Shown here in pieces: positions 1,575-46,219 of a DNA stretch of 64,000 bases. The position numbers and the translations under genes were made by a program. The DNA comes from Dendrobates tinctorius (lineage: Eukaryota): assembly GCF_039654945.1 (NCBI RefSeq), contig NW_027361707.1, positions 4,092,001 to 4,156,000 of the forward strand, read 5' to 3'. The first letter of the stretch is position 1; each line of letters begins with the position of its first letter. The notes below the pieces were generated by a model, which searched no databases, was not told the DNA's origin, and was given only the letters and a program-made list of their open reading frames with translations.

Positions 1575-3388
1575 TCTAATATATAAAGCTCAAAGTGTGT
1601 GTGTATGCGTACAAGCGTGCATGTGCGTACGCGCGTGCGTGTACGTGCACGCGCGTGTGTGTGTACGCGCGTGCGTGCGTATGCATGCGTGCGTGCGTAT
1701 GCATGCGTGCGTGCGTATGTCCGGGATAGGCATCCGCACCGTCGCAGCTACAGCCACAAAATTTGGCACAGTCGCACGTCTGGACCCCGAGAGCGTCCTA
1801 AGCTATGTTGTGAGGCGAAATTTCAACCCCGGGCGTTCCAATTCACCAAACAATTTTGCCCCTGTCTACATACTGGGGAAAAAGTGTGCGCACGTCAAGC
1901 CCCGCCCCTCATTATGATGTCATAATGCCCCTATTTGCATACTGGAGAAGCAGTGTGTGCGTATCAAGCCCCACCCCTCATTATGATGTCACAATGGTTG
2001 CCATGGCGACGCTGTCATCATAGGTTGCAAGCCCTGCCGCCGCTCATTATGATGTCATAATGGTTGACTATGGGATGGAGGATATATATGACGGGTATAT
2101 GGGCACGGGACTATGAGATGGCGGATATGTATGATGGGTATATGGGCACGGGACTATGGGATGGAGGATATGTATGATGGGTATATGGGCACGGGACTAT
2201 GGGATGGAGGATATGTATGATGGGTATATGGGCACGGGACTATGGGATGGAGGATATGTATGATGGGTATAGGGGCACGGGACTATGGGATGAAGGATGT
2301 GTGATGGGTATATGGGCACTCGACTATGGGATGGCGAATATGTATGATGGGTATATGGGCATGGGACTATGGGATGGCGAATATGTATGATGGGTATATG
2401 GGAACGGGACTATGGGATGGCGAATATGTATGATGGGTATATGGGCATGGGACGGCGAATATGTATGATGGATATATGGGCATGGGACTATGGGATGGAG
2501 AATATGTATGATGGGTATATGGGCATGGGACTATGGGATGGAGAATATGTATGATGGGTATTTGGGCATGGGACTGAGATGAAGGATGTGTGATGGGTAT
2601 ATGGGCACTCGACTATGGGATGGCAAATATGTATGATAGGTATATGGGCATGGGACTATGGGATGGAGGATATGTATGATGGGTATATGGGCACGGGACT
2701 ATGGGATGGAGGATATGTATGATGGGTATATGGGCATGGGACTATGGGATGGAGGATGTATGATGGGTATATGGTCACGGGACTATGGGATGGAGGATAT
2801 GTATGATGAGTATATGGGCACGGGACTATGGGATGGCGGATATGTATATGGGCACGGGACTATGGGATGGAGGATGTGTGATGGGTATATGGGCACTGGA
2901 CTATGGGATAGAGGATATGTATGACGGGTATATGGGCACGGGACTATGGGATGGCGGATATGTATATGGGCAGGGGACTATGGGATGGAGGATGTGTGAT
3001 GAGTATATGGGCACTGGACTATGGGATGGAGCATATGTTTGATGGGTATATGGGCACAGGACTATGGGATGGCGGATATGTATATGGGCACGGGACTATG
3101 GGATGCAGGATGTGTGATGGGTATATGGGCATGGGACTATGGAATGGAGGATGTGTGATGGGTATATGGGCATGGGACTATGGGATGGAGGATGTGCGAT
3201 GGGTATATGGGAACTCGACTATGGGATGGAGGATATGTATGATGGGTATATGGGCACAGGCCTATGGGATGGTGGATATGTATGATGGGTATATGGGCAC
3301 GGGACTATGGGATGGAGGATAATTATAATTTGTTATAACTAACCACAGTTAGTTACTATGCCCGGGCAGCGCCGGGCTCTTCAGCTAG
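1575..3388 (+). mobile_element. Non-autonomous Helitron
   Basis: Starts TC after an A and ends CTAG before a T, with no TSD; subterminal GC hairpin GCCCGGGCAGCGCCGGGC; the empty site CTGATTA|TAGAGG can be read in the opposite arm of the palindrome. Confidence 0.85.
2068..3320. repeat. ~43-bp minisatellite (CTATGGGATGGAGGATATGTATGATGGGTATATGGGCACGGGA) inside the Helitron; a purine-pyrimidine microsatellite lies at 1595-1720
   Basis: Directly visible tandem units. Confidence 0.95.
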
Positions 3389-5315: not shown

Positions 5316-5669
5316 AATAAAAGGAAACAGACAAGTAGTAAATGAAGTGATGATTTACTGACTGAGAGAGTGGTTTTTATACCTGCTATGAGTCAGCTGA
5401 GTGTTTATTATTGAGGTTGATGGCGGCGTCTGTCGCTTGTATCGGGCATTGTTCACATTACGTTTTATCTGCTCTCGCAGATTTTTGTCATGGGGGTCCT
5501 AACCGATACCGCCGATAGAAGCCTTACGTCACTCATAGGACCCCGTTGTAAATAAATGTATATGACCTCATTATCAGCATCCACACGTCCACGGGGGTCG
5601 CCTCTAGGCAATATTGTACCTCCCAAATGTACGATGGCAAAGAGGGACACAAACTTTTTGTGTTCAGCA

Positions 5670-8600
5670 CATTCCCTCACACACAGTATGATAACCCCCA
5701 CACAGTACATCCCCTCACACACGGTATGATGCCCCCCACAAAGTACATCCCCTTACACACAGTATGATGCCCCCCACAAAGTACATCCCCTCACACACGG
5801 TATGATGCCCCCCACACAGTACATCCCCTCACACACGGTATGATGCCCCCCACAAAGTACATCCCCTTACAAACAGTATGATGCCCCCCACACAGTACAT
5901 CCCCTCACACACGGTATGATGCCCCCCACACAGTACATCCCCTCACACACGGTATGATAACCCCCACACAGTACATCCCCTCACACACAGTATGATGCCC
6001 CCCACAAAGTACATCCCCTCACACACGGTATGATAACCCCCACACAGTACATCCCCTCACACACAGTATGATGCCCCCCACAAAGTACATCCCCTCACAC
6101 ACGGTATGATGCCCTCCACACAGTACATCCCCTCACACACAGTATGATAACCCCTCATGGTACATCCCCTCACACACGGTATGATAACCCCCACAAAGTA
6201 CATCCCCTCACACACAGTATGATAACCCCCCATGGTATATCCCCTCACACACAGTATGATGCCCCCCACACAGTACATCCCCTCACACACAGTATGATAA
6301 CCCCTCATGGTACATCCCCTCACACACAGTATGATAACCCCCACAAAGTACATCCCCTCACACACAGTATGATAACCCCCCATGGTACATCCCCTCACAC
6401 ACAGTATGATAACCCCCCATGGTATATCCCCTCACACACGGTATGATGCCCCCCACACAGTACATCCCCTCACACACAGTATGATAACCCCTCATGGTAC
6501 ATCCCCTCACACACGGTATGATAACCCCCACAAAGTACATCCCCTCACACACAGTATGATAACCCCCCATGGTATATCCCCTCACACACACGGTATGATG
6601 CCCCCCACACAGTACATCCCCTCACACACAGTATGATAACCCCTCATGGTACATCCCCTCACACACAGTATGATAACCCCCCCATGGTATATCCCCTCAC
6701 ACACGGTATGATGCCCCCCACACAGTACATCCCCTCACACACAGTATGATAACCCCTCATGGTACATCCCCTCACACACAGTATGATAACCCCCCATGGT
6801 ATATCCCCTCACACACAGTATGATGCCCCCCACACAGTACATCCCCTCACACACAGTATGATAACCCCTCATGGTATATCCCCTCACACACGGTATGATG
6901 CCCCCCACCCAGTACATCCCCTCACACACAGTATGATAACCCCTCATGGTATATCCCCTCACACACGGTATGATGCCCCCGACACAGTACATCCCCTCAC
7001 ACACAGTATGATAACCCCTCATGGTATATCCCCTCACACACGGTATGATGCCCCCCACACAGTACATCCCCTCACACACAGTATGATAACCCCTCATGGT
7101 ATATCCCCTCACACACAGTATGATAACCCCTCATGGTATATCCCCTCACACACAGTATGATAACCCCTCATGGTATATCCCCTCACACACAGTATGATGC
7201 CCCCCACACAGTACATCCCCTCACACACAGTATGATAACCCCTCATGGTATATCCCCTCACACACGGTATGATGCCCCCCACCCAGTACATCCCCTCACA
7301 TACAGTATGATAACCCCTCATGGTACATCCCCTCACACACAGTATGATAACCCCTCATGGTACATCCCCTCACACACAGTATGATAACCCCCCATGGTAT
7401 ATCCCCTCACACACGGTATGATGCCCCCCACACAGTACATCCCCTCACACACAGTATGATAACCCCTCATGGTACATCCCCTCACACACAGTATGATAAC
7501 CCCCCATGGTATATCCCCTCACACACAGTATGATGCCCCCCACACAGTACATCCCCTCACACACAGTATGATAACCCCTCATGGTATATCCCCTCACACA
7601 CGGTATGATGCCCCCCACCCAGTACATCCCCTCACACACAGTATGATAACCCCTCATGGTATATCCCCTCACACACGGTATGATCCCCCCGACACAGTAC
7701 ATCCCCTCACACACAGTATGATAACCCCTCATGGTATATCCCCTCACACACGGTATGATGCCCCCCACACAGTACATCCCCTCACACACAGTATGATAAC
7801 CCCTCATGGTATATCCCCTCACACACAGTATGATAACCCCTCATGGTATATCCCCTCACACACAGTATGATAACCCCTCATGGTATATCCCCTCACACAC
7901 GGTATGATGCCCCCCACACAGTACATCCCCTCACACACAGTATGATAACCCCTCATGGTACATCCCCTCACACACAGTATGATAACCCCTCATGGTATAT
8001 CCCCTCACACACAGTATGATAACCCCTCATGGTATATCCCCTCACACACGGTATGATGCCCCCCACACAGTACATCCCATCACACACAGTATGATAACCC
8101 CTCATGGTATATCCCCTCACACACGGTATGATGCCCCCGACACAGTACATCCCCTCACACACAGTATGATAACCCCTCATGGTATATCCCCTCACACACG
8201 GTAAGATGCCCCCCACACAGTACATCCCCTCACACACAGTATGATAACCCCTCATGGTATATCCCCTCACACACAGTATGATAACCCCTCATGGTATATC
8301 CCCTCACACACAGTATGATAACCCCTCATGGTATATCCCCTCACACACGGTATGATGCCCCCCACACAGTACATCCCCTTACACACGGTATGATAACCCC
8401 TCATGGTATATCCCCTCACACACGGTATGATGCCCCCCACACAGTACATCCCCTCACACACAGTATGATAACCCCTCATGGTATATCCCCTCACACACGG
8501 TATGATAACCCCTCATGGTATATCCCCTCACACACAGTATGATAACCCCTCATGGTATATCCCCTCACACACGGTATGATGCCCCCCACACAGTACATCC

Positions 8601-9720
8601 CCTCACACACAGTATGATAACCCCTCATGGTATATCCCCTCACACACGGTATGATAACCCCTCATGGTATATCCCCTCACACACAGTATGATAACCCCTC
8701 ATGGTATATCCCCTCACACACGGTATGATGCCCCCCACACAGTACATCCCCTCACACACAGTATGATAACCCCTCATGGTATATCCCCTCACACACGGTA
8801 TGATAACCCCTCATGGTATATCCCCTCACACACGGTATGATAACCCCTCATGGTATATCCCCTCACACACAGTATGATAACCCCTCATGGTATATCCCCT
8901 CACACACAGTATGATAACCCCTCATGGTATATCCCCTCACACACGGTATGATGCCCCCCACAGTACATCCCCTCACACACAGTATGATAACCCCTCATGG
9001 TACATCCCCTCACACACAGTATGATAACCCCCACACAGTACATCCCCTCACACACAGTATGATAACCCCTCATGGTACATCCCCTCACACACGGTATGAT
9101 GCCCCCCACACAGTACATCCCCTCACACACAGTATGATAACCCCTCATGGTACATCCCCTCACACGCAGTATGATAACCCCTCATGATATATCCCCTCAC
9201 ACACAGTATGATAACCCCTCATGGTATATCCCCTCACACACGGTATGATGCCCCCCACACAGTACATCCCCTTACACACGGTATGATAACCCCTCATGGT
9301 ATATCCCCTCACACACGGTATGATGCCCCCCACACAGTACATCCCCTCACACACAGTATGATAACCCCTCATGGTATATCCCCTCACACACGGTATGATG
9401 CCCCCCACACAGTACATCCCCTCACACACAGTATGATAACCCCTCATGGTATATCCCCTCACACACAGTATGATAACCCCTCATGGTATATCCCCTCACA
9501 CACGGTATGATGCCCCCCACACAGTACATCCCCTTACACACAGTATGATAACCCCTCATGGTATATCCCCTCACACACGGTATGATAACCCCTCATGGTA
9601 TATCCCCTCACACACGGTATGATGCCCCCCACACAGTACATCCCCTTACACACAGTATGATAACCCCTCATGGTATATCCCCTCACACACGGTATGATCC
9701 CCACACACAGTACATTCCCT
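5670..9720. repeat. 4-kb minisatellite of two interleaved 37/38-bp variants; decays to ~10200
   Basis: Variant cores GTATGATAACCCCTCATGGTATATCCCCTCACACAC and GTATGATGCCCCCCACACAGTACATCCCCTCACACAC. Confidence 0.95.
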
Positions 9721-10599
9721 CACACAGTATAATGTCCCCCACACTGCATTCTATACAGTATGATGCCCCCCACACAGTACATTCCCGCACACACAGTATG
9801 ATGCTCCCATAGTTCCATCTACACACTATATTGCTCCCCACACAGTATGATGATTCCACGGTGCTCCCCAAACACAGTATTGATGTACCCACAGTATATT
9901 CCCTCACACACAGTATGATGCCCACACAGTGCCCTCCAGACAGTATGATGGCCCCGCAGTGCTCCCCTCAGTGTTTCCCATTAACAGTGCCCCACACTGC
10001 CTCTTCCATATTATGGTGCCTCTCCATACACTAAGATTCCTCCAGAGCCCCCCCCACTGTATGATTCAGCCGCATAGCCCCCCATAGTATGAAGTTTCTG
10101 CAGTGCTCCCCCACAGTACTTCTCATAAATTACGCTTCCTTAGTGCCTTCCCCAAATTATGGTACCCGTCACACACTATAAGGCTCAGACACTGTCCTCC
10201 ATATAGATATAAATGTTGGGTATATCCAGCATCACATCCACATGTAATAATTAAAATAAAAGTCCCTTATTATTCCATGTTAAAATTAGAGATTAAAAAC
10301 ATACTTAAAAAAAAGTGCCCACTAAAAAATATGATACCCCACAGCTCACAAAATGACTAACTTGTGCTTGTACTGTGCATGGTTGAGTTCACAATGTGGC
10401 TACGTCATGCTTGTTATGTGTGTGGTGGAGCTCACAAAATGGCTACCTCGTGTTTGTAATTATGTGGAGCTCACAAAAGAGCTACCTCATGGTTGCAATG
10501 TATGCGGTGGAGCTCAAAAACTGGCTACCTCATCCTAGTAATGAGTATGTAAAAGCTCTTGAAATGGCTACCTTGTGCTTGCAATGCGTGTGGAGTAAC

Positions 10600-10980
10600 T
10601 CCCAAAATGGCTACCATGTGCTTGTAATATATGTGGAGCTCACAAAATGGCTACCATGTGCTTGTAATATATGTGGAGCTCACAAAATGGCTACCATGTG
10701 CTTGTAATATATGTGGAGCTCACAAAATGGCTACCATGTGCTTGTAATATATGTGGCGCTCACAAAATGGCTACCATGTGCTTGTAATATATGTGGAGCT
10801 TACAAAATGGCTACCATGTGCTTGTAATATATGTGGAGCTCACAAAATGGCTACCATGTGCTTGTAATATATGTGGAGCTCACAAAATGGCTACCATGTG
10901 CTTGTAATATATGTGGAGCTCACAAAATGGCTACCATGTGCTTGTAATATATGTGGAGCTCACAAAATGGCTACCTTGTA
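10600..10980. repeat. 40-bp minisatellite (~9 near-perfect copies, degenerate flanks)
   Basis: CTCACAAAATGGCTACCATGTGCTTGTAATATATGTGGAG tandem. Confidence 0.95.
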
Positions 10981-12650
10981 CTAGTAATGTATGCAGTAGA
11001 GTGCACAATATGGCTACTTCGTGCTTGTACTGTATACGGTAGAACTTACAAAATGGCTACCTCGTGCTTGGAGAGAGAGGTGAATTTCAGTCAGTTGCCA
11101 CGTGGCACTATGGATACGTTGCCAACACTGGACGTTACATTGACTAAGCTGTACAAGGTCTTTCCTGTGGACAGTAATGTTATGCCATGCCTTGGTTTCC
11201 TCATAGAGAAATAGAGTCAATGCCAATTGGAGCCTATAACTTGGACACATGCCAATGGTGCTACTAAAGCGGCGAGCGCCAGAAGAACAGAGGGATATGG
11301 TGGCCATGTTAACCTGCCTCGCCAATATCCTGGACGTACAGTGGGAACGGAAAGTATTCAGACCTCTTTAAACGTTTAACTTTTTGTTTCATTGCAGCCA
11401 ATTGGTAAACTCAAAAAAGTTCATTTTTTTCTCATTACTGTACACTCTGCACCCCATCATGACTGGAAAAAAAACAGAAATGTAGAATTTTTTGCAAATT
11501 TATTAAAAAAGAAAAACTGAAATATCACATGGTCATAAGTATTCAGACCCTTTGCTCAGTATTGAGTAGAAGCACCTTTTGAGCTAGTACAGCCATGAGA
11601 CTTCTTGGGAATGATGCCACAAGTTTTTCACACCTGGATTTGGGGATCCTCTGCCATTCTTCCTTGCAGATCCTCTCCAGTTCCATCAGATTGGATGGTG
11701 AATGTTGGCGGACAGCCATTTTCAGGTCTCTCCAGAGATGCTCAATTGGGTTTAGGTCAGGGCTCTGGCTGGGCCAGTCAAGAATGGTCACAGAGTTATT
11801 CTGAAGTCACTCCTTTGTTATTTTAGCTGAGTGCTTAGGGTCATTGTCTTGTTGGAAGGTGACCCTTCGGCCAAGTCTGAGGTCCAGAGCACTCTGAAAG
11901 AGGTTTTCATCCAGGATATCTCTGTACTTGGTCGCATTCATGTTTCCTTCAATTGCAACCAGTCGTTCTGTCCCTGCAGCTGAAAAACACCCCCATAGCA
12001 TGATGCTGCCACCACCATGTTTCACTGTTGGGATTGTATTGGGCAGGTGATGAGCAGTGCCTGGTTTTCTCCACACATACCACTTAAAATTATCACCGAA
12101 AAGTTCTATCTTGGTCTCATCAGACCAGAGAATCTTATTTCTCATAGTCTGGGAGTCCTTCATGTGTTTTTTTTATCAAACTCTATGTGGTCTTGCATAT
12201 GTCTGGCACTGTGGAGAGGCTTCTGTTGGGCCGCTCTATCAAAAAGGCCCGACTGGTGGAGGGCTGCAGTGATAGTTGACTTTGTGGAACTTTCTCTCAT
12301 CTCCCTACTGCATCTGTGGAGCTCAGCCACAGTGATCTTGGGGTTCTTCTTTACCTCTCTCATCAAGACTCTTCTCCCACGATTGCTCAGTTTGGCTGGA
12401 CGACCAGGTCTAGGAAGACTTCTGGTGGTGCCAAACTTCTTCCATTTAAGGATTATGGAGGCCACTGTGCTCTTAGGAACCTTGAGTACAGCAGAATTCC
12501 TTTTGTAACCTTGGCCAGATCTGTGCCTTGCTACAATTCTGTCTCTGAGCTCCTTGGCCAGTTCCTTTGACCTCTTGATTCTCATTTGGTCTGACATGCA
12601 CTGTGAGCTGTGAGGTCTTATATAGACAGGTGTGCGCCTTTACAAATCAA

Positions 12651-12992
12651 TGATACTTCTTGGATATCGGTCAGACGCCTCTCTCACAGCCAAGCCAGAT
12701 CTCCCACTTTGCTCTGATGAGGGGCAGTACCCCGAAACACAGTGTCTGCAAATGGAGATTCTGGCTTGGCTTTTATCCTAAGTCATGTAAGAAGGCTCGT
12801 TAAAGGGTCGACATTGACTTTTAGGATTGCTACCTCCAATAGGTGGCACTAGAGTTCTAGTCCTCTTCCTCTCTGAAGAGACAATTTGCATAATTAGCAT
12901 ATTTCCCAGAGGAGCATTGCGGCTTTAAGTCTCCTCACCTCGACATGCTTAGCATGTCATTCTCCGCAAGGAGAAATTATACTTCTTGGATA
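12651..12992 (+). mobile_element. Retrozyme/satellite-2-like non-autonomous retroelement inserted into the Tc1
   Basis: 12-bp TSD TTTACAAATCAA (12639-12650, 12993-13004); 15-bp terminal redundancy ATACTTCTTGGATAT with a 326-bp period; contains a hammerhead. Confidence 0.85.
12688..12771 (+). ncRNA. Type I hammerhead ribozyme with extended stem I; predicted cleavage after GUC at 12746
   Basis: CTGATGA (12714-12720), stem II GGGG-CAGTA-CCCC, GAAA, stem III CAC-A-GTG, then TC; stem I AGCCAAGCCAG..ATCTCC..TTTGC pairs with GCAAA..GGAGAT..CTGGCTTGGCT. Confidence 0.85.
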
Positions 12993-13758
12993 TTTACAAA
13001 TCAAGTCATGTCAGTTTAATTAACCACAGCTGGACTCCAATGAAGGAGTAGAACCATCTCAAGGAGGATCACAAGGAAATGGACAGCATGTGACTTAAAT
13101 AGGAGTGTATGTGCAAAGGGTCTGAATACTTATGACCATGTGATATTTCAGTTTTTCTTTTTTAATAAATTTGCAAAAATGTCTACATTTCTGTTTTCTT
13201 TCAGTCAAGATGGGGTGCAGAGTGGACATTAATGAGAAAAAAAAAACAACTTTTTTGCATTTACCAAATGGCTGACATGAAACAAAGAGTGAAAAGTTTA
13301 AAGGGGTCTGAATACTTTCTGTACCTCCTGTAAATCCCTCAATCTGACATTCACGGTCCGAGACTACTTTGTACAGACCAGCAGCCACGGATCTCCTTGA
13401 CCCAAGTTTGGATCCCAACATCACAGACTGTACTGCACCGGCCTAGCATAATGGCAGCTGTGTGCCCCTCACCTCCCCCTTCCCTAACACAGGAAATCAA
13501 CACCATTCACATGTCCTGAAATAATAGATGACATGCCATGGATAGGTGGAGGCCTGGCTGCGGCTGTTCTGCTCCCTAAGGCCTCATTCACATGAAGTTT
13601 TTTCACAGATAGTACACACACCTGTTATAGCCTTGGGGGATGTTCACATGTCCATGTTATTTTTGGGGCCCGAGTGTCTGAAAATATAAAACTTTAACAC
13701 CACTTATCTAATCTTACCTAATTAAGGATTCAGCATAATGATGAAAAATGTTCCATAA

Positions 13759-14539: not shown

Positions 14540-17155
14540 ATCAAGGACACTGATGAAAAACGGTCCATAAATCAGATCAAGAGCAAAAAACGGCCTGTAA
14601 ATCAGATCAAGAGCAAAACACGGCCCATAAATCAGATCAAGAGCGAAAAACAGCCCGTAAATCAGATCAAGAGCGAAAAATGGCCTGTAAATCAGATCAA
14701 GAGTGAAAAATGGTCTGTAAATCAGATCAAGAGCACTAATGAAAAACGGCCCGTAAATCAGATCAAGAGCGAAAAACAGCCCGTAAATCAGATCCAGAGC
14801 GAAAAATGGTCCGTAAATCAGATCAAGAGCGAAAAACGGCCTGTAAATCAGATCAAGAGCAAAACACGGCCCGTAAATCAGATCAAGAGCGAAAAACAGC
14901 CCGTAAATCAGATCAAGAGCGAAAAACGGCCCGTAAATCAGATCAAGAGTGAAAAATGGTCTGTAAATCAGATCAAGAGCACTAATGAAAAACGGCCCGT
15001 AAATCAGATCAAGAGTGAAAAACAGCCCGTAAATCAGATCCAGAGCGAAAAATGGTCCGTAAATCAGATCAAGAGCGAAAAACGGCCCGTAAATCAGATC
15101 AAGAGCACTAATGAAAAACGACCTGTAAATCAGATCAAGAGCGAAAAACGGTCCGCAAATCAGATCAAGAGCAAAAAACGGCCCGTAAATCAGATTAAGA
15201 GCAAAAAATGGTCCGTAAATCAGATCAAGAGCGAAAAACGGTCCGTAAATCAGATCAAGAGCAAAAAATGGTCCGTAAATCAGATCAAGAGCGAAAAACG
15301 GTCCGTAAGTCAGCTCAAGAGTGAAAAACGGTCTGTAAGTCAGCTCAAGAGTGAAAAACGGTCCGTAAATCAGATCAAGAGCACTAATGAAAAAACGGCC
15401 CATAAATCAGATCAAGAGCGAAAAACGGTCCGTAAATCAGATCAAGAGCACTAATGAAAAATGGCCCATAAATCAGATCAAGAGCCAAAAACGGTCCGTA
15501 AATCAGATCAAGAGCACTAATGAAAAATGGTCCATAAATCAGATCAAGAGCGAAAAATGGCCCATAAATCAGATCAAGAGCAAAAAACGGCCCATAAATC
15601 AGATCAAGAGCCAAAAACGGTCCGTAAATCAGATCAAGAGCATTAATGAAAAATGGCCCATAAATCAGATCAAGAGCCAAAAACGGTCCGTAAATCAGAT
15701 CAAGAGCACTAATGAAAAATGGTCCATAAATCAGATCAAGAGCGAAAAATGGCCCATAAATCAGATCAAGAGCAAAAAACGGCCCATAAATCAGATCAAG
15801 AGCCAAAAACGGTCCGTAAATCAGATCAAGAGCATTAATGAAAAATGGCCCATAAATCAGATCAAGAGCCAAAAACGGCCCATAAATCAGATCAAGAGCC
15901 AAAAACGGTCCGTAAATCAGATCAAGAGGGCTAATGAAAAATGGCCCATAAATCAGATCAAGAGCGAAAAACGGTCCGTAAATCAGATTAAGCTTAAGAC
16001 TAAGATTAAGACTAAGCTGGCTTAGTGATCGGACCCAAAGAGTGGTCGTAAATGGCTGCACATCCAGTTGGAAGAATGTCTCAAGTGGGGTACCACAGGG
16101 CTCTGTCCTGGGCCCTGTATTGTTCAACATCTTTATCAACGATTTAGATGAAGGAATTGAGGGTAAACTGATTAAATTTGCTGATGACACAAAGCTAGGA
16201 GGGATAGCTAATACTAGAGAAGAGAGAGAGAGGATTCAAAAAGATTTAAATAAACTGGAGAAGTGGGCAGTAACTAACAGAATGGTTTTTAACAGGGAGA
16301 AATGCAAAGTACTACATCTGGGCAATAAAAATGAAAAAAGCATATATAGAATGGGAGGAATAGGGCTAAGTGACAGCACATGTGAAAAAGACTTGGGTAT
16401 ACTAATAGATCACAGACTGAATATGAGTCAACAGTGTGATGCAGCAGCAAAAAAGGCAAATGCAATTCTAGGATGTATTAACAGAAGCATACAGTCTAGA
16501 TCACGTGAAGTCATTATTTCCCTCTACTCCTCTTTGGTCAGACCTCATCTGGAATATTGTGTCCAGTTTTGGGCACCACATTTTAAAAAAGACATCAACA
16601 AACTGGAGCAAGTTCAGAAAAGAGCGACCAGAATGGTGACCGGTCTGCAAACCCTGTCTTATGAGGAAAGGTTGCAGGATTTGGGAATGTTTAGTTTGCA
16701 AAAGAGAAGACTGAGAGGAGACTTAATTGCTGTCTACAAATATCTAAAGGGCTGTCACATTGTAGAAGGATCAACTTTATTCTCATTTGCACAAGGAAAG
16801 ACTAGAAGCAATGGGATGAAACTGAATGGGAGGAGACACAGATTAGATATTAGAAAAAACTTTTTGACAGTTAGAGTGATCAATGAGTGGAACAGGCTGC
16901 CACGAGAAGTGGTGAGTTCTCCTTCAATGGAAGTCTTCAAACAGAGGCTGGACAGACATCTGACTGGGATGATTTAGCGAATCCTGCTTTGAGCAGGGGG
17001 TTGGACCAGATGGCCCAGGAGGTCCCTTCCAACTCTACGATTCTATGATTCTATGAGATCAAGAGGGCTAATGAAAAATGGCCCATAAATCAGATCAAGA
17101 GCCAAAAACGGCCCATAAATCAGATCAAGAGTGAAAAACGGCCCGTAAATCAGAT
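14540..17155. repeat. 30/36-bp minisatellite (TAAATCAGATCAAGAGCGAAAAACGGCCCG) split by a CR1 insertion
   Basis: The array runs 14540-15988 and resumes at 17056-17155. Confidence 0.95.
16017..17055 (+). mobile_element. 5'-truncated CR1 LINE (RT C-terminal part and 3' UTR)
   Basis: Open ORF with GVPQGSVLGP, FADD and LVRPHLEYCVQFW; 3' tail of ATTCTATG repeats. Confidence 0.95.
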
Positions 17156-21400: not shown

Positions 21401-23554
21401 GTCAGCCATTCCTTTCTATTCACATTGGTCTGACTGGATATACATGCAGCCTCTGAGTCCTTTAGTCGTTGTTCCATCTCATTATCCTCCCTTGAAGTTA
21501 ACCCTTTTGATATAAGAGATTGTAGAGGCTAAACATCCTCTCAGATACGCCTTAAGGGTATCCCAAAATAAGTCAACATCTCAGGGTTCCGGGTGGGATG
21601 AAATAAAACAATTCAATTGATCTATAGTTCTATCATCAGATCCTATTAGTTTCAGACACAATAGATTGAATTTCCAGACTATATCGTTATTTGAAGTTTA
21701 AGTATAACCGGGCTATGATCCGAAACCTCTCTGTTGCCATGCTCGACACTGTCCTCCCACACCGCCAAGTTGCTGGATCCAAATATGTAATCTATGTGGG
21801 ATAAGGTGCACCTGGTAGATGAATGACAAGTGTATTCTTTCCCCTCAGGATGGTGCACCCTCCATAAATCTAGCCATCCACTGCCCTCGAGGAACAATGC
21901 CAGTTGAGACGGGTGTGGAGAAGTGCCCCTCCGGACATCCCATCACCCAATCTAAGGGGTACTTCACACTAAGCGAGATCACTAGCGATCATGTAGCGAC
22001 ACAACAGCGATCCTGACCAGCTCGTATCGTTGTCGGGATCGTTGGTGCGTCGCTTAGTGTAACGGGACCCTAAGCCTATCGAGGCAATTATTCATGACTG
22101 CATTGAAGTCCCCCATACATATAACATGCGCATCCCAGTAATTTATAGCGAAACTCATCACCTTTTGAAGGATTGACACATTAGCCGGAGGGGGGTTATA
22201 TATACACAATATGACGTATTTTCTTCAGTCTATCAATGCATATACAAAAACAAAGCGGCCCTCAGGATCCCTCCGAGCCTCTCTGACCTCCCATCTAACG
22301 TTTCTATATATCAATAATGAGACCCCCTTGAATAACTAGTGTGGAACGAGTGAATGAACCATTGTACCCATGGCTTTTGCACGCATCGAACTGTGTCTCT
22401 GGTCAGGTGCGTCTCCACCAAAGCCACAATGTGTGGGTGATACCGCCTAATCTGGGAAAATACCATAATCTTCTTACGAGGAGATTTGAGGTCCCTCACA
22501 TTCCAGGTCATACATATGATTTCAGAACCCATATCTTCTCATCTGAACATGGCATACATTATCGCTCAGGCAAAATTCAGAGACATCACATGTAAATATT
22601 TGACGGCGGCTTCTGCATAAATAATAAGAACCAAAACTAGTATAGAAAAGAGAACATAAGAAAAACCAGAAGAACATAAAGGAGCAAAGTCCTGTGCTCC
22701 TATCATTGGTTAAACAAAGGGATACCCTCACTGAATACAGTGTCATACTGGACACCAATAGAAGGAGCTCCAATCGCACAATTATCAAAATAGTCCCGTC
22801 CGGCATATTAGGAATTCTTTGCATCAGACCCCCTATGGGACTGCAGCCATTCAGCTGCCTCCGCTGGATCCAAGAAAATTTTGGTGGAGTCCTCATGGAC
22901 GATTCGGAGTCTGGCTGGATAGACCACGGAATATAAAACATTCTTTTCCCTGAGCTGCTTCTTGATCTCCAAGAATTGTTCCCGCTGCTTCTGGAGTTCC
23001 ATAGAGAAATCCGGGAAAATTGAGATCGTAGCATTACTAAATTTAATAGGACTCCTCTGCCGCACCAAACGTAAAATAGAATCTCTGTCCCTGCAATTGA
23101 GAAGGCGCGCCAGGAAAGGCCTGGGTGGAGCACCCGGAGGGAGAGGTTTTGTAGGGACCCTATGAGCCCTTTCAAGAGAGAACGTGGATGAGAATTCATC
23201 TCCCAGAGAGGTTTTAAGCCAGCTTTCCAGAAATTGCTCAGGTTGCTGACCCTCAGAGCACTCCGGCAGACCAATGATTCGTATATTGTTCCGGCGTAAT
23301 CTATTCTCTAGATCGTCTGCTTTTTGCTTCCAGGCGTTCAAAGAGCCAGCCTCTTTTGCCTACTTAGCCTCCATAGGTGTAATAGTGTCTTCTATATGGG
23401 ACACTCTTGTTTCAACTTCTGTAATGCGCCCCCTCATGGCCTGCATGTCCTGCCGGAGACGCCACACCTCAGTGTGCACATCCTCTATTTTCTCAGTCAG
23501 GGATGTTCTGGTCAAAGATATGGCCTTTCTTCAACTGTTCTCATGCCTGTCTAA

Positions 23555-24344: not shown

Positions 24345-25872
24345 TCATAGAATCATAGAATCATAGAATCGTAGAGTTGGAAGGGACCTCCTGGGCCATC
24401 TGGTCCAACCCCCTGCTCAAAGCAGGATTCGCTAAATCATCCCAGTCAGATGTCTGTCCAGCCTCTGTTTGAAGACTTCCATTGAAGGAGAACTCACCAC
24501 TTCTCGTGGCAGCCTGTTCCACTCATTGATCACTCTAACTGTCAAAAAGTTTTTTCTAATATCTAATCTGTGTCTCTTCCCATTCAGTTTCATCCCATTG
24601 CTTCTAGTCTTTCCTTGTGCAAATGAGAATAAAGTTGATCCTTCTACAATGTGACAGCCCTTTAGATATTTGTAGACAGCTATTAAGTCTCCTCTCAGTC
24701 TTCTCTTTTGCAAACTAAACATTCCCAAATCCTGCAACCTTTCCTCATAAGACAGGGTTTGCAGACCGGTCACCATTCTGGTCGCTCTTTTCTGAACTTG
24801 CTCCAGTTTGTTGATGTCTTTTTTAAAATGTGGTGCCCAAAACTGGACACAATATTCCAGATGAGGTCTGACCAAAGAGGAGTAGAGGGAAATAATGACT
24901 TCACGTGATCTAGACTGTATGCTTCTGTTAATACATCCTAGAATTGCATTTGCCTTTTTTGCTGCTGCATCACACTGTTGACTCATATTCAGTCTGTGAT
25001 CTATTAGTATACCCAAGTCTTTTTCACATGTGCTGTCACTTAGCCCTATTCCTCCCATTCTATATATGCTTTTTTCATTTTTATTGCCCAGATGTAGTAC
25101 TTTGCATTTCTCCCTGTTAAAAACCATTCTGTTAGTTGCTGCCCACTTCTCCAGTTTATTTAAATCTTTTTGAATCCTCTCTCTCTCTTCTCTAGTATTA
25201 GCTATCCCTCCTAGCTTTGTGTCATCAGCAAATTTAATCAGTTTACCCTCAATTCCTTCATCTAAATCATTGATAAAGATGTTGAACAATACAGGGCCCA
25301 GGACAGAGCCCTGTGGTACCCCACTTGAGACATTCTTCCAACTGGATGTGCAGCCATTTACGACCACTCTTTGGGTCCGATCACTAAGCCAGTTATGAAT
25401 CCACCTAACAGTTGCCTTGTCCATTCCATACTTAGTCATTTTTTCAATAAGGATTGTATGAGAGACTTTGTCAAATGCTTTGCTGAAGTCAAGATATACT
25501 ATATCTACAGCATTTCCTTGATCCACCCAATCAGTGATACCGTCATAGAAGGAAATTAAGTTAGTCTGACATGACTTATTAGTTAGAAACCCATGCTGAC
25601 TGTTTAATCACTTCATTCTTATCCAGGTATTGACATACATGTTGTTTAATAATTTGTTCAAAGATCTTTCCTGGTATAGAAGTCAGACTCACCGGCCTAT
25701 AGTTGCCTGGGTCCACCTTCTTCCCCTTTTTGAAGATAGGAACAACATTTGCTCTTCTCCAGTCTTCTGGCACTTCTCCTGTTCTCCAAGAATTTTCAAA
25801 GATTATGGAGAGGGGTTCAAAAGTTTCTTCTGCTATCTCCTTCAGTACTCTGGGGTGTAATTCATCTGGACC
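24345..25872 (-). mobile_element. 5'-truncated CR1 LINE, same family as 16017-17055, inserted in the L1 5' UTR
   Basis: 364-aa RT ORF (YLDFSKAFD, GVPQGS, FADD); upstream NYRPVSLTS part is frameshifted; (ATTCTATG)n tail. Confidence 0.95.
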
Positions 25873-27611
25873 TCCTCTCAGTTTCTCTGCTGGTCGGGGG
25901 ATATTTACAGCGCCCGACACACCGGAGGCCGGGACCGCTCTCACGCAAGGATCAGAAGTCTCCCGGAGCCCAGGGGACTGCACTGCCTATATATATGCCG
26001 CGCCAGAGGGGGTCTCAAGAGCAGGATTGCACCAGGATCATAGGAGCTCCTCCATGACACGTCCTCACCGCACCATTACATCGCCACGCCCCCCACACCC
26101 ATTTTTTTTGCGTACGAGTGCTATTCTTTTTCACAGACAATACTCTAAGATTAGAAAACTAATCAAACCCGGACCAAATTCCAATTTTCTTGTACGAGAA
26201 AAATCACTGACATCTGAACGAGGCCTAAAGCCAACAGGACCGTGATCAGATCGCAATACCCACCCAAGCAGCCTGTTCTCCAGACATAGGCATGGTTAGA
26301 TGGGGGCAGGCGACCCAACGGTAGGGCCGAGTATTGCGACCCGAGAACAGATAGGCAGGTTTCACCTAACAGCAGTCGATTTCAGCAGGGCTATTTAACC
26401 ATGTAACGTCTTTGGGGCGTCCACACTTTTTCCTCATGGGAAATACAGAAGTGGCCATGTTGGATTTCCACCAAAGGTGTCTCTGGCAGCAGCCTAGTCC
26501 CTTGTAAAGTCCTCAGAACTTGATCAGTTGAGGTGTCCCAACTCATTTGTTGGAGGAGATAATGGTTGGTTCCCATAGTGGTCTGTCAGTCATGTTCTCC
26601 TCCTCTCTCCCAAGAGAAGCTCAGATTTATGGTTGAGTGGGGGAGAAATAGCTGATGGATGGACACCGGCAGCCAGCGCATGTGAATGGCCAGCTTCACC
26701 CCCAGGTGGGGGACATTTTACCAATTTGTCACTAAACATCAGCCTGAACAGGAAACAGACTGTATACACATGAGAACCGTAGAGGGGAGAGTCCATAATT
26801 GTTATACAAAGGTATACCCACAGGAACATGAAGCTAGGATGGAGTGGCGAGATGTGCGGCTGTCATCCTTAACGAGGGGCATAGCGAAAGACCATGCAAT
26901 GGAGTTTAGGACGTATAACAGGATGTGGTGGAAAATGAGGACAGGACCCTGAGGACATTGCTTCCAAACATTACACAGCTCACAGATACCATCATGGTCT
27001 TATGATAGGAGCCACCGGGGTAACAAGTCCATCCATGTCATTTCTTCCTCTGGAATATCACCTGTGAGTGATATTAAGTGGAAGGAACCGCAGCCACAAA
27101 GTGGAGACCCCATAATGTTACAGAACGGGGGTCACTGAGTGCTGAGGAGCAGAAAAGTCACTAACGCTCTGCTGACTCCATAACAAAGAATAAACTCAGA
27201 AGTAAAACATATTACTACACATGCAAATAATATGAGGTAACTTAATACCAAGTCAACTATGGGGGAAGAAGTCTCCTACTGTAAGTGCATGTGTGCTGCA
27301 GACTAAATGGCGACCCATTGGCGAAATCACAAGAAATCAAAAAGCAAACAAACTGAGAACCAGGTTATTAGTGCTGGTGGAAAATAAACTTTGATAAAGT
27401 ATTTGGAATGTGTAGTATGCCTGTGAAGCAGTCATTGAAGATTTGCCACATGGAAGTTCCCACCCTGACGCGCGTTTCAAAGTCTGCGTTCATCAGTGAG
27501 GATCAATATGATCAACTTACCATCCTTTTACACTCTGGCAACTACAGTATATGTTTTTACAGACGTCTATGCACTATATTTTCACAATATGATACTTGTG
27601 AAAACTAATTA

Positions 27612-31878: not shown

Positions 31879-33447
31879 GGGCAAAAAAGTATTTAGTCAG
31901 TCAGCATTAGTGCAAGTTCCACCACTTAAAAAGATGAGAGGCGTCTGTAATTTACATCATAGGTAGACCTCAACTATGGGAGACAAACTGAGAAAGAAAA
32001 ATCCAGAAAATCACATTGTCTTTTTCATTTTATTTGCATATTATGGTGGAAAATAAGTATTTGGTCAGAAACAAGATTTCTTGCTCTCACAGACCTGTAA
32101 CTTCTTCTTTAAGAGTCTCCTCTTTCCTCCACTCATTACCTGTAGTAATGGCACCTGTTTAAACTTGTTATCAGTATAAAAAGACAACGGTGCACACCCT
32201 CAAACAGTCTGACTCCAAACTCCACTATGGTGAAGACCAAAGAGCTGTAAAGGACACCAGAAACAAAATTGTAGCCCTGCACCAGGCTGGGAAGACTGAA
32301 TCTGCAATAGCCAACCAGCTTGGAGTGAAGAAAATCAACTGTGGGCACAATAATTAGAAAATGGAAGACATACAAGACCACTGATAATCTCCCTCGATCT
32401 GGTGCTCCATGCAAAATCCCACCCCGTGGGGGTCAGAATGATCACAAGAACGGTGAGCAAAAATCCCAGAACCACGTGGGGGGACCTAGTGAATGAACTG
32501 CAGAAAGCTGGGACCAGTGTAACAAGGCATACCATAAGTAACACACTACGCCACCATGGACTCAGATCCTGCAGTGCCAGACGTGTCCCACTGCTTAAGC
32601 CTGTACATGTCCAGGCCCGTCTGAAGTTTGCTAGAGAGCATTTGGATGATCCAGAGGAGTTTTGGGAGAATGTCCTATGGTCTGATGAAACCAAACTGGA
32701 ACTGTTTGGTAGAAACACAACTTGTCGTGTTTGGAGGAAAAAGAATACTGAGTTGCATCCATCAAACACCATACCTACTGTAAAGCATGGTGGTGGAAAC
32801 ATCATGCTTTGGGGCTGTTTCTCTGCAAAGGGGCCAGGACGACTGATCCGGGTACATGAAAGAATGAATGGGGCCATGTATCGTGAGATTTTGAGTGCAA
32901 ACCTCCTTCCATCAGCAAGGGCATTGAAGATTAAACGTGGCTGGGTCTTTCAACATGACAATGATCCAAAGCACACCGCCAGGGCAACGAAGGAGTGGCT
33001 TCGTAAGAAGCATTTCAAGGTCCTGGAGTGGCCTAGCCAGTCTCCAGATCTCAACCCTATAGAAAACCTTTGGAGGGAGTTGAAAGTCCGTGTTGCCAAG
33101 CGAAAAGCCAAAAACATCACTGCTCTAGAGGAGATCTGCATGGAGGAATGGGCCAACATACCAACAACAGTGTGTGGCAACCTTGTGAAGACTTACAGAA
33201 AACGTTTGACCTCTGTCATTGCCAACAAAGGATATATCACAAAGTATTGAGATGAAATTTTGTTTCTGACCAAATACTTATTTTCCACCATAATATGCAA
33301 ATAAAACAGACAGTGATTTTCTGGATTTTTTTTCTCAGTTTGTCTCCCATAGTTGAGGTCTACCTATGATGTAAATTACAGACGCCTCTCATCTTTTTAA
33401 GTGGTGGAACTTGCACTATTGCTGACTGACTAAATACTTTTTTGATA

Positions 33448-34032: not shown

Positions 34033-34334
34033 CTGCATAAATATAAACAAGGAAGAGATGACAGATCCCTCTATTCTCTGCCGTGCCCCACAGACCTTAA
34101 AAGTCACCGATCCTAAGTGTCCACATGGAGTCGCCAGAAACTCAGCTGGCAAGTCACCCGTTACCACTGACTAGAAGAGTCCCATACAACCTAAAAGAAA
34201 GCCAGCAAAACCCACACCGATTTACATGGGGGTCCGCTGACCACGTACCATGCATCACCTCTGAGAGACACCGAGTGATGATGTAACCGCCAGGTGCTAC
34301 CACCACAGACTTGTATTAGAAGCACATGTGCTAC

Positions 34335-34809
34335 CTGATGTTGAAAGACTCCACATTGGGGTTAACGCTGGCGACCAGTATGGTTATAAACTGCACAGGA
34401 GTGTTGGAGTCCGGGGACATTTCGTGGTGCCTGGACTCGGTTACAGTGAGATGAATGTCTTGCTGGTGAGCCACATACACCTTGTAGGTGGTGACCTTCA
34501 TCACCCAGGAGTCTGTGACGATAATCCGGGCCCCAGGAGCCCCTGTTGCAAACTTGTCTATGCTCCGGAACTCCCTGTTGATGGAGGAGGCCACGACCGT
34601 CCAGTCAGACTGAGGCAGCGCATGGTGAGACAGGACCAGCGCCAAAGGGTGATTACTCCACTTCTTCCAAGACCAGTAGTGGATGAGGCAGCCGGTGGTG
34701 GCCGGGAGGACGAACACAAACAGAGCAAAGACCCTCCAACCTTCACTGGCAGAGTCAAAGTAATACAGCTGCTTCTCCGGGGCCGCCAGGCACATCCCTA
34801 TATAATAAC
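34335..34809 (-). CDS. TMEM129: TMEM129 exon 2
   Basis: YYIGMCLAAPEK..DKFATGAPGARIIVTDSWVMKVTTY..FNIR; 475 nt; CAG/GTAG boundaries. Confidence 0.97.
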
Positions 34810-35039
34810 CTGGGAGCAAGAAGAGGAAGGAGTCACAACCCTTACTGCTACAGCACCAACGAGGGGCACACAAGCGATACAGGGAGGAAGGAGGTACAGG
34901 CAGCAGTGAAGATGCAAATGGCGCAGGGGACACAGAGGGGGGAAGCAGGAGGTAGAAGAGATGCATGAGGCAGCACAGGACATGCAGGCGGTGCAATGGG
35001 GGTGGGGCATAGGGGATGAAGGCCAGAGCAGATGCCGGC

Positions 35040-35680
35040 ACCGGAGGAGGACATGCGGGGGTGGCAATTGGCAATGCAGACAGCGGAGGAGGACATGCGG
35101 GGGGCGGCGGCACGGGGGGGGGGGGGAATGCAGACAGCGGAGGAAGACATGCGGGGGCAGCACAGGGGGGGGGGGATGCAGACAGCGGAGGAGGACATGC
35201 GGGGGGCGGCGGCACGAATGCAGACAGCGGAGGAGGACATGCGGGGGGCGGCGGCACGAATGCAGACAGCGGAGGAAGACATGCGGGGGCAGCACAGGGG
35301 GGGGGATGCAGACAGCAGAGGACATGCGGGGGCAGCACAGGGGGGGGGGGCCATAGACAGCAGAGGAGGACATGCGGGGGCAGCACAGGGGGGGGGGGCC
35401 ACAGACAGCAGAGGAGGACATGCGGGGGCAGCACAGGGGGGGGGGGACACAGACAGCAGAGGAGGACATGCGGGGGCAGCACAGGGGGGGGGGGGACACA
35501 GACAGCAGAGGAGGACATGCGGGGGCAGCACAGGGGGGGGGACACAGACAGCAGAGGAGGACATGCGGGGGCAGCACAGGGGGGGGGGATGCAGACAGCA
35601 GAGGACATGCGGGGGCAGCACAGGGGGGGGGGATGCAGACAGCAGAGGACATGCGGGGGCAGCACAGGGGGAGGACATGC
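35040..35680. repeat. GC-rich ~50-bp minisatellite with G-tracts in TMEM129 intron 1
   Basis: GCAGACAGCAGAGGAGGACATGCGGGGGCAGCACAG(G)n units. Confidence 0.9.
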
Positions 35681-35697
35681 AGCAGGCAGCCACTCAC

Positions 35698-35902
35698 CCA
35701 GGGGCAGCAGGGAGTGCACCATAAGCGTGGCCGCGGTTCTCCGCACATGGTACTGAATGAAGGCCATGTCCTCAATCCCCAGCCAGCCGGACAGCAGGTT
35801 CTGCACGGTGATCCCGGCCGAGCGGAACTCATTGGGGGTGAACACGAAGCACACGGAGAACACCACGTAAGCCAACGTGAAGGTGACGGCCGGGCTCTCC
35901 AT
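35698..35902 (-). CDS. TMEM129: TMEM129 exon 1 (spliced CDS is 362 aa)
   Basis: MESPAVTFTLAYVVFSVCFVFTPNEF..HSLLPLG|GTGAGT; exon lengths 205+475+160+249 = 1089 nt. Confidence 0.97.
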
Positions 35903-35964
35903 CACAGTGCGGAGCAGGGGGAAGTCTGTAACCATCGTACACTGCGGGGAAAACACCACAAAAA

Positions 35965-36040
35965 CAGCGCACACTTCCGGTACAGCAGGGCATGCCGGGG
36001 ATTGTAGTTATAAAGCGGTTCTCAGAGTCACGTGACGGGA
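35965..36040 (-). promoter_or_regulatory. TMEM129 proximal promoter
   Basis: ETS CCGGAAGTG, ZNF143-type ACTACAATCCCCGGCATGC, palindromic E-box GTCACGTGAC. Confidence 0.65.
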
Positions 36041-37062: not shown

Positions 37063-37267
37063 TTACAGATAGTGACTTACCGCTGACGTTCTTTCTGATG
37101 GAATCATTCACTTTTCACGCCTTTGCCATCAGGCCCAGACCGACATGACGACTCCTCCAGCCAGGACTTGACTACAGAGAATACAACAAAGGCACATTTC
37201 ACATCTCACATTTTCAGCACTGTCCGAAACGGGACTATTCCCAACCTGCACAAACTCCTCATCCTGC

Positions 37268-37630
37268 TGATACCCCAATACTGAGCCGCTGCTGCCGTAT
37301 GTGTCCCTATTACTGCACCTGATACCCCAATGCTGAGCCGCTGCTGCCGTATGTGTCCCTATTACTTCACCTGATACCCCAATACTGAGCCGCTGCTGCC
37401 GTATGTGTCCCTATTACTGCACCTGATACCCCAATGCTGAGCCGCTGCTGCCGTATGTGTCCCTATTACTGCACCTGATACCCCAATGCTGAGCCGCTGC
37501 TGCCGTGTGTCCCTATTACTGCACCTGATACCCCAATGCTGAGCCGCTGCTGCCGTATGTGTCCCTATTACTGCACCTGATACCCCAATGCTGAGCCGCT
37601 GCTGCCGTATGTGTCCCTATTACTTCACCT
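37268..37630. repeat. 46-bp minisatellite (~8 copies)
   Basis: CTGATACCCCAATGCTGAGCCGCTGCTGCCGTATGTGTCCCTATTACTGCAC-type units. Confidence 0.9.
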
Positions 37631-40343: not shown

Positions 40344-40669
40344 CTCCTAGAATATAGTAATGCTGGGTGCAAGAACCCTAGAAAACGGCCCACATTTTGC
40401 CCCTAGAAAGTAATATTGCCCTGTGTGCCCCTTTGACAGTTTACATTTAATAATGTCTCAAGTCTCCCCCCTGTACAGCTCCCCTATACACAATATGATG
40501 CCCCCTCACTGTATAGTACTACCCACACAGTATACAGACCCCTTAGTAGCCCCCAAACTATTAAATGGCTCCCTCACTGTAATCTCCACACTGTATGATG
40601 GCTCCCTAGATAGCCTCAATGTAGTATAATGCACTGAATAGTGCTCAATATAGTATAATGCACTCCGCA

Positions 40670-42080
40670 TAGGCAGACTCTATATAGTATACTGCACCCC
40701 CATACGCAGACGCTATATAGCATAATGCAACCTCACAGGCAGACTCTATATAGTATACTGCACCCCCATACGCAGACGCTATATAGCATAATGCAACCTC
40801 ACAGGCAGACCAGGCAGACTCTATATTGTATAATGCAGCCCAATAGGCAGACTCTATATAGTATACTGCACCCCCATAAGCAGAGTCTATATTGTATAAT
40901 ACACTCCCCATAGGCAAACTCTATATAACACAATGCAACCTCACAGGCAGACTCTATATAGTATAATGCACCCCCCATAGGCAGACTCTATATAGTATAC
41001 TGCACCCCCATAAGCAGAGTCTATATTGTATAATACACTCCCCATAGGCAAACTCTATATAACACAATGCAACCTCACAGGCAGACTCTATATAGTATAA
41101 TGCACCCCCCATAGGCAGACTCTATATAGTATACTGCACCCCCATAAGCAGAGTCTATATTGTATAATACACTCCCCATAGGCAAACTCTATATAACACA
41201 ATGCAACCTCACAGGCAGACTCTATATAGTATAATGCACCCCCCATAGGCAGACTCTATATAGTATACTGCACCCCCATAAGCAGACTCTATATTTTATA
41301 ATGCACCCCCATACGCAGACTCTATATAGCATAATGCAACCTCACAGGCAGACCAGGCAGACTCTATATTGTATAATGCAGCCCCATAGGCAGACTCTAT
41401 ATAGTATACTGCACCCCCATAAGCAGAGTCTATATTGTATAATGCACTCCCCATAGGCAGACTCTATATAGCATAATGCAACCTCACAGGCAGACTCTAT
41501 ATTGTATAATGCACCCCCCATAGGCAGACTCTATATAGTATACTGCACCCCCATAAGCAGACTCTATATTGTATAATACACTCCCCATATGCAGACTCTA
41601 TATAGTATACTGCACCCCCATAGGCAGACTCTATATAGCATAATGCAACCTCACAGGCAGACTCTATATTGTATAATGCACCCCCCCATAGGCATACTCT
41701 ATATAGTATACTGCACCCCCATTAGCAGACTCTATATTGTATAATGCACTCCCCATAGGCAGACTCTATATAGTATACTGCACCCCCATAGGCAGACTCT
41801 ATATAGCATAGTGCAACCTCACAGGCAGACTGTATATTGTATAATGCACCCCCTTAGGCAGACTCTATATTGTATAATGCACCCCCATAGGCAGACTCTA
41901 TATTGTATAATGCACCCACATACGCAGACTCTATATTGTATAATGCACCCCCATAGGCAGACTCTATATTGTATAATGCACTCCCGTAAGGCAGCCTCTA
42001 TACTATAGCATAATGCACCCCTCATAGGCAGACTATATAGTATAATGCACCCCCATAGGCAGACTATACTGTATATAGTA
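40670..42080. repeat. ~36-bp minisatellite with trimeric higher-order structure
   Basis: GGCAGACTCTATATAGTATAATGCACCCCCATA variants. Confidence 0.95.
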
Positions 42081-45655: not shown

Positions 45656-46219
45656 ACTTGTTTGTTTGTACATATGGGAATTATTTTGGGGACCCCCTGC
45701 CCTTTATTTAATAAAAAAAAAAAAAATGACTGTTTTCAAGGCCCCATGTGTGCATATTTTTAAATTGGTAACCCAGGTTCTCTCTGCTTTGTGGCAGGTA
45801 TTGTGCAGACCTCCTATTTTTAACTACTTCCCATTTGCCCATAGATGATTGATGTCTGGGCGGACCACACGTTAATCTGTATTGACTTTCTAAAAAGTCA
45901 CTTCATAGTAGAGCAGCTGCCATTATGGAGCTGTAGGAGCGGGGAGCCGGCTGTCAGACAGAGATAGTTTGTTACCGACTCTTCCTGATCGCTGTGTGTA
46001 CAGAATAGGCAGTGCTGACAGCGCTTCCTCTTACAGTCCCAGCGGTCATGTGATCACTGGGTTTAAGGAAGGAGCTGGAACTGCTGTGTTCTGGGAAATC
46101 CGGTCAGCTGTTATGTAGGCAGAAGGGTGAGTTTCCACTGTAACTGGGGATAATATACCAGCCCCAGTTACAGGGGAAATCGGATGAAAAAAAACAATAT
46201 ATAATATACTATCTTCTGC

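Follow-up and report, generated by a model that had tools for sequence, protein, structure and literature searches.

A probable solo copy of a hammerhead-bearing non-LTR retrozyme inserted into a Tc1-type transposon of the frog Dendrobates tinctorius

In this work we ask what has interrupted a Tc1/Sleeping-Beauty-type transposon of Dendrobates tinctorius, and by which route it could have come there. The window, that is the whole analysed stretch of 64,000 nucleotides (contig NW_027361707.1), holds at 12651-12992 of the plus strand an insert of 342 bp. It belongs to a non-coding hammerhead repeat with a period of 326 bp, of which it covers 1.05 units. We find it most probable that this is a solo copy of an abundant, SINE-like non-LTR retrozyme of the frog, with a non-coding unit of about 326 nt and a type I hammerhead of the satellite 2 kind, which was inserted into Tc1 at a staggered break. 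The features on which the argument is built are collected in Table 1.

Table 1. Positions of the features of the insert and of its host transposon within the window
Feature	Position	Strand	Basis or remark
Target site duplication (TSD), left copy, 12-mer TTTACAAATCAA	12639-12650	.	exact direct repeat; A/T at 9/12
TSD, right copy, TTTACAAATCAA	12993-13004	.	exact direct repeat, 12 bp
Insert start, 16 nt	12651-12666	+	repeated at 12977-12992, 15/16 identical
Insert end, 16 nt	12977-12992	+	repeat of 12651-12666
Host Tc1/Sleeping-Beauty-type transposon	11332-13337	-	terminal inverted repeats 11332-11558 / 13110-13337
Tc1 transposase ORF, N-terminal part	12597 down to 12160	-	Pfam HTH_SB 9e-25 + HTH_Tnp_Tc3_2
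Type I hammerhead domain	12688-12771	+	pair table, MFE fold, descriptor
Helix I	5' strand 12688-12713, 3' strand 12747-12771	+	12 + 5 + 5 = 22 standard pairs
Core CUGAUGA	12714-12720	+	pair table
Helix II GGGG/CCCC	12721-12724 / 12730-12733	+	4 standard pairs, loop CAGUA
GAAA	12734-12737	+	pair table
Helix III ACAC-A-GUGU, palindromic	12737-12740 / 12742-12745	+	4 standard pairs, 1-nt loop
C17	12746	+	3' end of GUC; T-C at 12745-12746
Predicted self-cleavage site, 3' of GUC	12746/12747	+	motif position; 96 nt from copy 5' end
Exact octamer ATTTGCAT	12885-12892	+	followed by the imperfect Staf/SPH-like site
Staf/SPH-like site, imperfect	12903-12920	+	SBS rule of PMC3082894: CCCR met (CCCA), conserved C at position 13 instead of 12

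Data on other copies were taken from Logan contigs of four public runs (X1, X5, X8 and X17) on 12501-13144, which are summary tables rather than single copies. X1 is labelled 'DNA?' and X5 is of unknown kind, both of about 2 gigabases, X8 and X17 are merely guessed to be RNA, and contigs cannot show RNA ends.

The first-pass annotation had described a discrete insertion with an exact 12-bp TSD in the 5' region of Tc1. The duplication is indeed exact, and empty Tc1 sites were found in three of the runs (four contigs in X1, one in X5 and three in X17). These contigs, in which 12638 is joined to 12993 with 354 bases skipped and 12 letters shared, are other copies of Tc1 without the insert, carrying a single 12-mer. 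Loose contig ends behind 12650 and before 12993 run on as Tc1 sequence. In the host transposon the inverted arms measure 93, 102 and 50 nt and match at 82-96%. The insert is oriented antisense to the Tc1 transposase and lies 53 nt upstream of its ATG, and thus, given the start of the transposase ORF, sits in the 5' untranslated part of Tc1. It entered an already existing, older Tc1 at a staggered break, which left the 12-bp duplication. Among the rows listed, about six positions (12694, 12713, 12754, 12791, 12810 and 12834; less than 2%) set the copy apart from the majority of the family, and the flanking Tc1 departs from its own majority by about 2%, similarly to the insert; the insertion is fairly young, not brand-new.

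The exact place of the junctions is uncertain by 2 nt (AA) at the left and by 1 nt (T) at the right end of the insert. Such microhomology of 1-2 nt at both junctions counts in favour of a capture at the DNA level, in which repair of a break in Tc1 would have used extrachromosomal circular DNA of satellite origin, or a tandem array as the source of filler DNA, and a circular or tandem DNA donor would likewise yield a permuted copy slightly longer than one unit. We consider this route very improbable, because a clean 12-bp target duplication is a sign of staggered endonuclease nicks and not of end-joining, and because the hundreds of independent family ends with unlike AT-rich flanks, described below, are as for an active retroelement.

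Returning to the retrozyme reading, the structure of the insert is simple. No poly(A) was found on 12651-12992, and the 3' end reads ...GGATA; the repeat search found no terminal inverted repeats at the insert, helix I of the hammerhead being its sole inverted repeat. Neither an ORF over 49 aa, nor a tRNA or tRNA-like part, nor long terminal direct repeats are present in 12651-12992, so that the lack of poly(A), TIRs and ORF noticed at first reading was confirmed. In a direct repeat search 12649-12667 and 12975-12993 were identical at 18 of 19 positions with a spacing of 326, and the sole mismatch of the 16-nt overlap is G at 12652 against T at 12978. Since the 16-nt start is repeated at the insert end with a period of 326, the copy is longer than one unit. 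The period given by the first-pass annotation therefore stands, while its claim that the first 15 nt recur has to be shifted: the exact 15-mer is 12653-12667, which equals 12979-12993 and reaches 1 nt into the right TSD. A unit slightly exceeding one monomer and starting away from the cleavage site had also been proposed, and both parts agree with the 1.05 units found here and with the position of the predicted cut 96 nt inside the copy.

BLAST of the element against the window gave no second copy in the 64 kb. Other repeats are numerous there. Minisatellite arrays with periods of 24-126 bp were observed at 2066-3321, 5665-9726, 10343-11070, 14555-15992, 37267-37630, 40644-42065, 44322-45658 and 52215-52563, among them one of 4 kb built of 37/75-bp units and another of 1.3 kb, whose 86-bp units share 94% identity; these arrays are unrelated to the retrozyme. 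A long ORF with a Tmpp129 domain (5.8e-64) at 34331-35974 of the minus strand is overlapped by a GC-rich tandem array of 42-48 bp, and another ORF at 56941-57846 of the plus strand carries a LAP2alpha domain (2.9e-21); both are likely exons of host genes, or else retrocopies. The 147 N in a row at 56490-56636 are an assembly gap or a mask.

The initial claim of a type I hammerhead core with a long bulged stem I was recovered both by the descriptor and by hand, all helix pairs being standard save one U-U. Every position of the hammerhead core (C3-U4-G5-A6-N7-G8-A9 ... G12-A13-A14 ... A15.1-U16.1, H17) is matched, and the layout is that of type I, with helix I open-ended and helices II and III closed by loops. 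Helix I is interrupted by a 1-nt bulge at 12759, by an internal loop (12705-12707 / 12753) and by the U-U at 12713/12747. The predicted cut site is uninterrupted within the copy. Helices I and II are both present in the minimum free energy (MFE) fold, whose z-score against shuffles is -5.2. A descriptor of the core plus three helices found one site in the 64-kb window and three sites in 300 dinucleotide shuffles (0.01 per shuffled window); it demanded just 5/8 helix I pairs, and 22 are present at 12688-12771.

Although the same core and three-helix junction as in the Rfam hammerhead families are seen by manual and descriptor analysis, no Rfam model matches. A search with Infernal and Rfam hammerhead models had been named in advance as a check, and it brought no support: no hammerhead family reached the gathering score on the whole window, nor did any appear when 651 nt or just 101 nt were searched with E up to 10, where the output consisted of weak chance miRNA/snoRNA matches on the long hairpin and nothing else. 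A possible reason for the miss is the 1-nt loop of helix III together with the very long, bulged helix I.

Helix III itself deserves attention. On paper it has four pairs with the 1-nt loop; sterically, it comes to three pairs with a triloop. The fold of the monomer has -39.0 kcal/mol with this helix and -39.6 without it, the MFE structure preferring a competing pairing. When two domains are joined by an intermolecular ACAC.GUGU helix, the gain is 6.8 kcal/mol. The view that a stem III with a 1-nt loop would be too weak in a monomer thus held, no stability being gained in the fold. These folding energies support the expectation that the motif would act as a dimer, like published amphibian hammerheads, for which good cleavage was reported with dimers and poor cleavage with monomers (PMC7229834). 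The circular fold of the 326-nt monomer, with a GC content of 46%, has a predicted -108 kcal/mol and z = -4.4.

Comparison with the family adds to this picture. Element 31-mers occur in runs that belong to ten studies and bear four organism labels; among the listed runs with such 31-mers none is on record as RNA. In X1 and X5 the summed contig depth of the element, which should not be read as a copy number, is comparable to that of the Tc1 flanks, therefore the repeat is high-copy, and the dispersed family suspected at first reading is borne out by its abundance and by 31-mers under four labels. Other copies were also sought in metagenomes (by conserved hammerhead strings), by exact look-up of small ORFs and in protein databases, with no match; these collections are uninformative on a frog genome.

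In all four runs position 12713 is A in more than 99% of depth. The U-U beside the core, which had already been pointed out, is hence a private feature of the present copy; in the family, helix I is closed by an A-U pair at this place. Because it consists of a single unit and carries this private U-U beside the core, this copy is predicted to be probably inert. Within the catalytic core just 12718 (N7) varies among the rows listed, between T and C, with C at 16% in X1, 79% in X5 and 97% in X17. N7 is the one position that the hammerhead does not need. Among the rows listed there are no variants in 12719-12740 or 12882-12925, and about 30 in the rest of the unit. Two position pairs of helix I (12694/12765 and 12704/12754) hint at an exchange of G-C to A-U; we do not count these as covariation, since owing to truncated copies the depths differ two-fold between the strands.

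One could object that an ordinary repeat carries here, by chance or after decay, a string that looks like a hammerhead and has no role as a ribozyme. The silence of the Rfam covariance models speaks for this, as does the sole frog bench test, in which most retrozyme dimers failed to cleave (8/9; bioRxiv 10.64898/2026.07.22.740005), a result that counts against ribozyme function. Two other core-like strings of the window, moreover, are clearly due to chance. The one at 32682-32726 reads CTGATGA...GAAAC...GTC and can be drawn with a 'helix II' of 7 bp and a 'helix III' closed by a 1-nt loop; it was rejected as it lies inside a second Tc1 transposase frame (ORF 32402-33250), has A-A at the base of helix II and failed the descriptor; the other, at 27467-27496 of the minus strand, is devoid of helices II or III. 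For the motif in the insert such an origin is barely credible in view of the descriptor result, obtained with a lenient demand on helix I, of the variation confined to the free core position N7 among thousands of contigs (rows listed), and of the family base at 12713, which restores the pair beside the core.

We then considered where other copies begin and end. Twenty-nine X1 contigs and one X8 contig reach 12649 from ...CCGCAAGGAGA, which is the unit end at 12964-12974; the unit in other copies therefore continues across the 5' end of this one. In X17 a back-joint leads from 12953 to 12650 ('goes back 304'). Multiple units thus occur head-to-tail, as seen in the junctions of unit end and unit start in X1 and X8 and in the back-joint of X17. 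Hundreds of contigs stop matching at 12890-12893 (170 + 354 in X1 and 293 in X5) and go on with unlike AT-rich continuations of a median of about 250 nt, which means that ends differ between copies. Depth climbs towards 12853-12874 and drops after 12896, as 5'-truncated copies ending near 12892 would give. The ends of the present copy are not the common family ends; with a 3' end at 12992, about 100 nt away from the common end (~12892), its priming site is atypical. Ends that vary from copy to copy, named in the first-pass annotation as a possible support, were hence observed in the contig tables, where other copies either read through or end elsewhere. Of the eight X1 contig pieces listed, two begin their match at 12745, beside the predicted cut site, the contig itself continuing; these starts could reflect copies from ribozyme-cut RNA and are too few to judge.

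The same junctions bear on a further explanation, namely that the insert is a 5'-truncated terminal piece (pseudo-LTR, pLTR, plus hammerhead) of an autonomous Penelope-like element (PLE). Insertions of PLEs are mostly 5'-truncated, with one terminal repeat and its hammerhead kept (PMC8557442; bioRxiv 10.64898/2026.07.22.740005), and frog retrozyme families are sister to PLE pLTRs (bioRxiv 10.64898/2026.07.22.740005). This origin appears quite improbable to us. The 5' 16 nt repeat the 3' end at a 326-nt period, hence the template was unit after unit and not an ORF followed by a pLTR; contigs join unit end to unit start; and the motif is a full type I hammerhead with helix III and a long helix I, while the hammerheads of PLEs are minimal and lack helix III (PMC7761336).

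As a solo retrozyme copy, the preferred reading, the insert can be set beside known systems. It resembles metazoan non-LTR retrozymes (PMC7229834; bioRxiv 10.64898/2026.07.22.740005) in having a non-coding unit of 326 nt, within their range of 170-400 nt, and a type I hammerhead, in its GC content below 50%, in the absence of LTR, PBS and PPT, in the many copies and dispersed monomers, and in a TSD longer than 4 bp. The average unit of amphibian retrozymes is 316 bp according to the same sources. In contrast to tandem retrozyme arrays, the present copy is a solo insertion. Satellite 2 of newt and axolotl is given as about 330 bp (Epstein & Gall 1987 as cited in PMC7229834); the likeness to it (HHR_Amex1/2) is one of size and form, comprising the unit length, the type I hammerhead and the weak palindromic helix III, and the octamer block recalls the promoter reported for the newt repeat. 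HHR_Amex1 differs in its helix III, which is a single pair with a palindromic tetraloop cap instead of ACAC-A-GUGU. With Penelope-like insertions (PMC8557442, PMC11167929) the insert shares an AT-rich target, a length above one unit (partial tandem), the lack of poly(A) and a variable 5' end; unlike them, it has neither an RT/GIY-YIG ORF nor an inverted 5' arm nor a recognisable 30-40-bp tail. By eye, short similarities (TTCCCAGA and GTCTCCTCA..CTTAGC) to REP4, Penelope-6 and Neptune primers (bioRxiv 10.64898/2026.07.22.740005) were noticed, which are suggestive only.

As to the mechanism, in the published model of animal non-LTR retrozymes (PMC7229834, PMC7761336) the hammerhead cuts the transcript, a host ligase joins the products into circles, and a reverse transcriptase (RT) acting in trans copies them into cDNA of more than one unit. 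With a purified enzyme of Penelope-like type, AT-rich DNA was nicked and reverse transcription began within multimeric RNA (PMC11167929). The present copy could have been made in a similar way, with a reverse transcriptase supplied in trans that would act by target-primed reverse transcription on AT-rich DNA. The most likely source of such an enzyme would be a Penelope-like element, the pseudo-LTRs of which have been published as relatives of the frog retrozymes. In the 64-kb window no Penelope-like RT or GIY-YIG domain was found, the RT ORFs there being LINE-like; 12651-12992 is devoid of the inverted 5' arm that many insertions of PLE type show, and no 30-40-bp tail was recognised on the insert, there being no canonical family end for comparison. 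As arm, tail and a partner PLE are frequent and not obligatory, their absence lowers the attribution to a Penelope-like enzyme without removing it. The RT ORF fragments of the window (Pfam RVT_1, with a weak L1 dsRBD-like match), located at 16042-16977 and 57578-58813 of the plus strand and at 24432-25526 and 22808-23341 of the minus strand, are LINE-type remains.

The template would have been longer than one unit, being either an uncleaved multimer of a tandem array or a re-ligated circle of the monomer. These two account equally well for a permuted copy of 1.05 units. We lean slightly towards the uncleaved multimeric transcript; a monomer circle copied slightly more than one round is a serious candidate too, to which we would give a little less than an even chance. 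From the sequence of the overlap, its single mismatch would fit slightly different neighbouring units of an array a little better, and could also be a later mutation. In the life cycle of the family the hammerhead would trim multimers to monomers, presumably as a dimer, since helix III by itself is too weak, and a host RNA ligase would close the monomers.

Outside the ribozyme core, 12882-12925 is the only long block of the family free of variants among the rows listed, and it contains the octamer and the Staf/SPH-like site of Table 1. Many family copies end within this octamer, at 12890-12893. No PSE was identified alongside the octamer block in the unit. For newt satellite 2 an snRNA-type promoter has been reported (Coats et al. 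1994, cited in PMC2220036). By analogy, the block 12885-12920 is a candidate internal enhancer or promoter of snRNA type, and in the mechanism above it might serve as the element's own snRNA-type enhancer; the octamer may mark the usual start of reverse transcription. A more specific account would combine these points: the block would provide the element with an snRNA-type promoter of its own, the octamer would also be the usual RT start, and the present copy would have arisen from an atypical start of the reverse transcriptase followed by slightly more than one round on a closed 326-nt RNA circle. We regard this account as rather unlikely. If true, such a footprint of a circle would be direct vertebrate genomic evidence for circles, and not array transcripts, as the transposition intermediate.

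Repeat-associated hammerheads of Xenopus tropicalis were reported in 2011 (PMC3088659), non-LTR retrozymes of amphibians and frogs, with dispersed monomers and cDNA of more than one unit made from a circle, have already been described (PMC7229834; PMC7761336; bioRxiv 10.64898/2026.07.22.740005), and such elements are carried by 7/7 sampled amphibians, with 57 families in Xenopus and monomers spread evenly along chromosomes (bioRxiv 10.64898/2026.07.22.740005). The kind is thus already published for amphibians, frogs included, and the present copy, clean but ordinary, changes nothing in present knowledge. It is a well-bounded example of the published class, with an exact TSD, an empty site, an internal cut site and more than one unit, and it fits the published model in which animal retrozymes spread via RNA longer than one unit. 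To those working on frog retrozymes two observations on the family are possibly of use: its invariant parts are the ribozyme core and the octamer/SPH-like block, and many of its copies end within the octamer.
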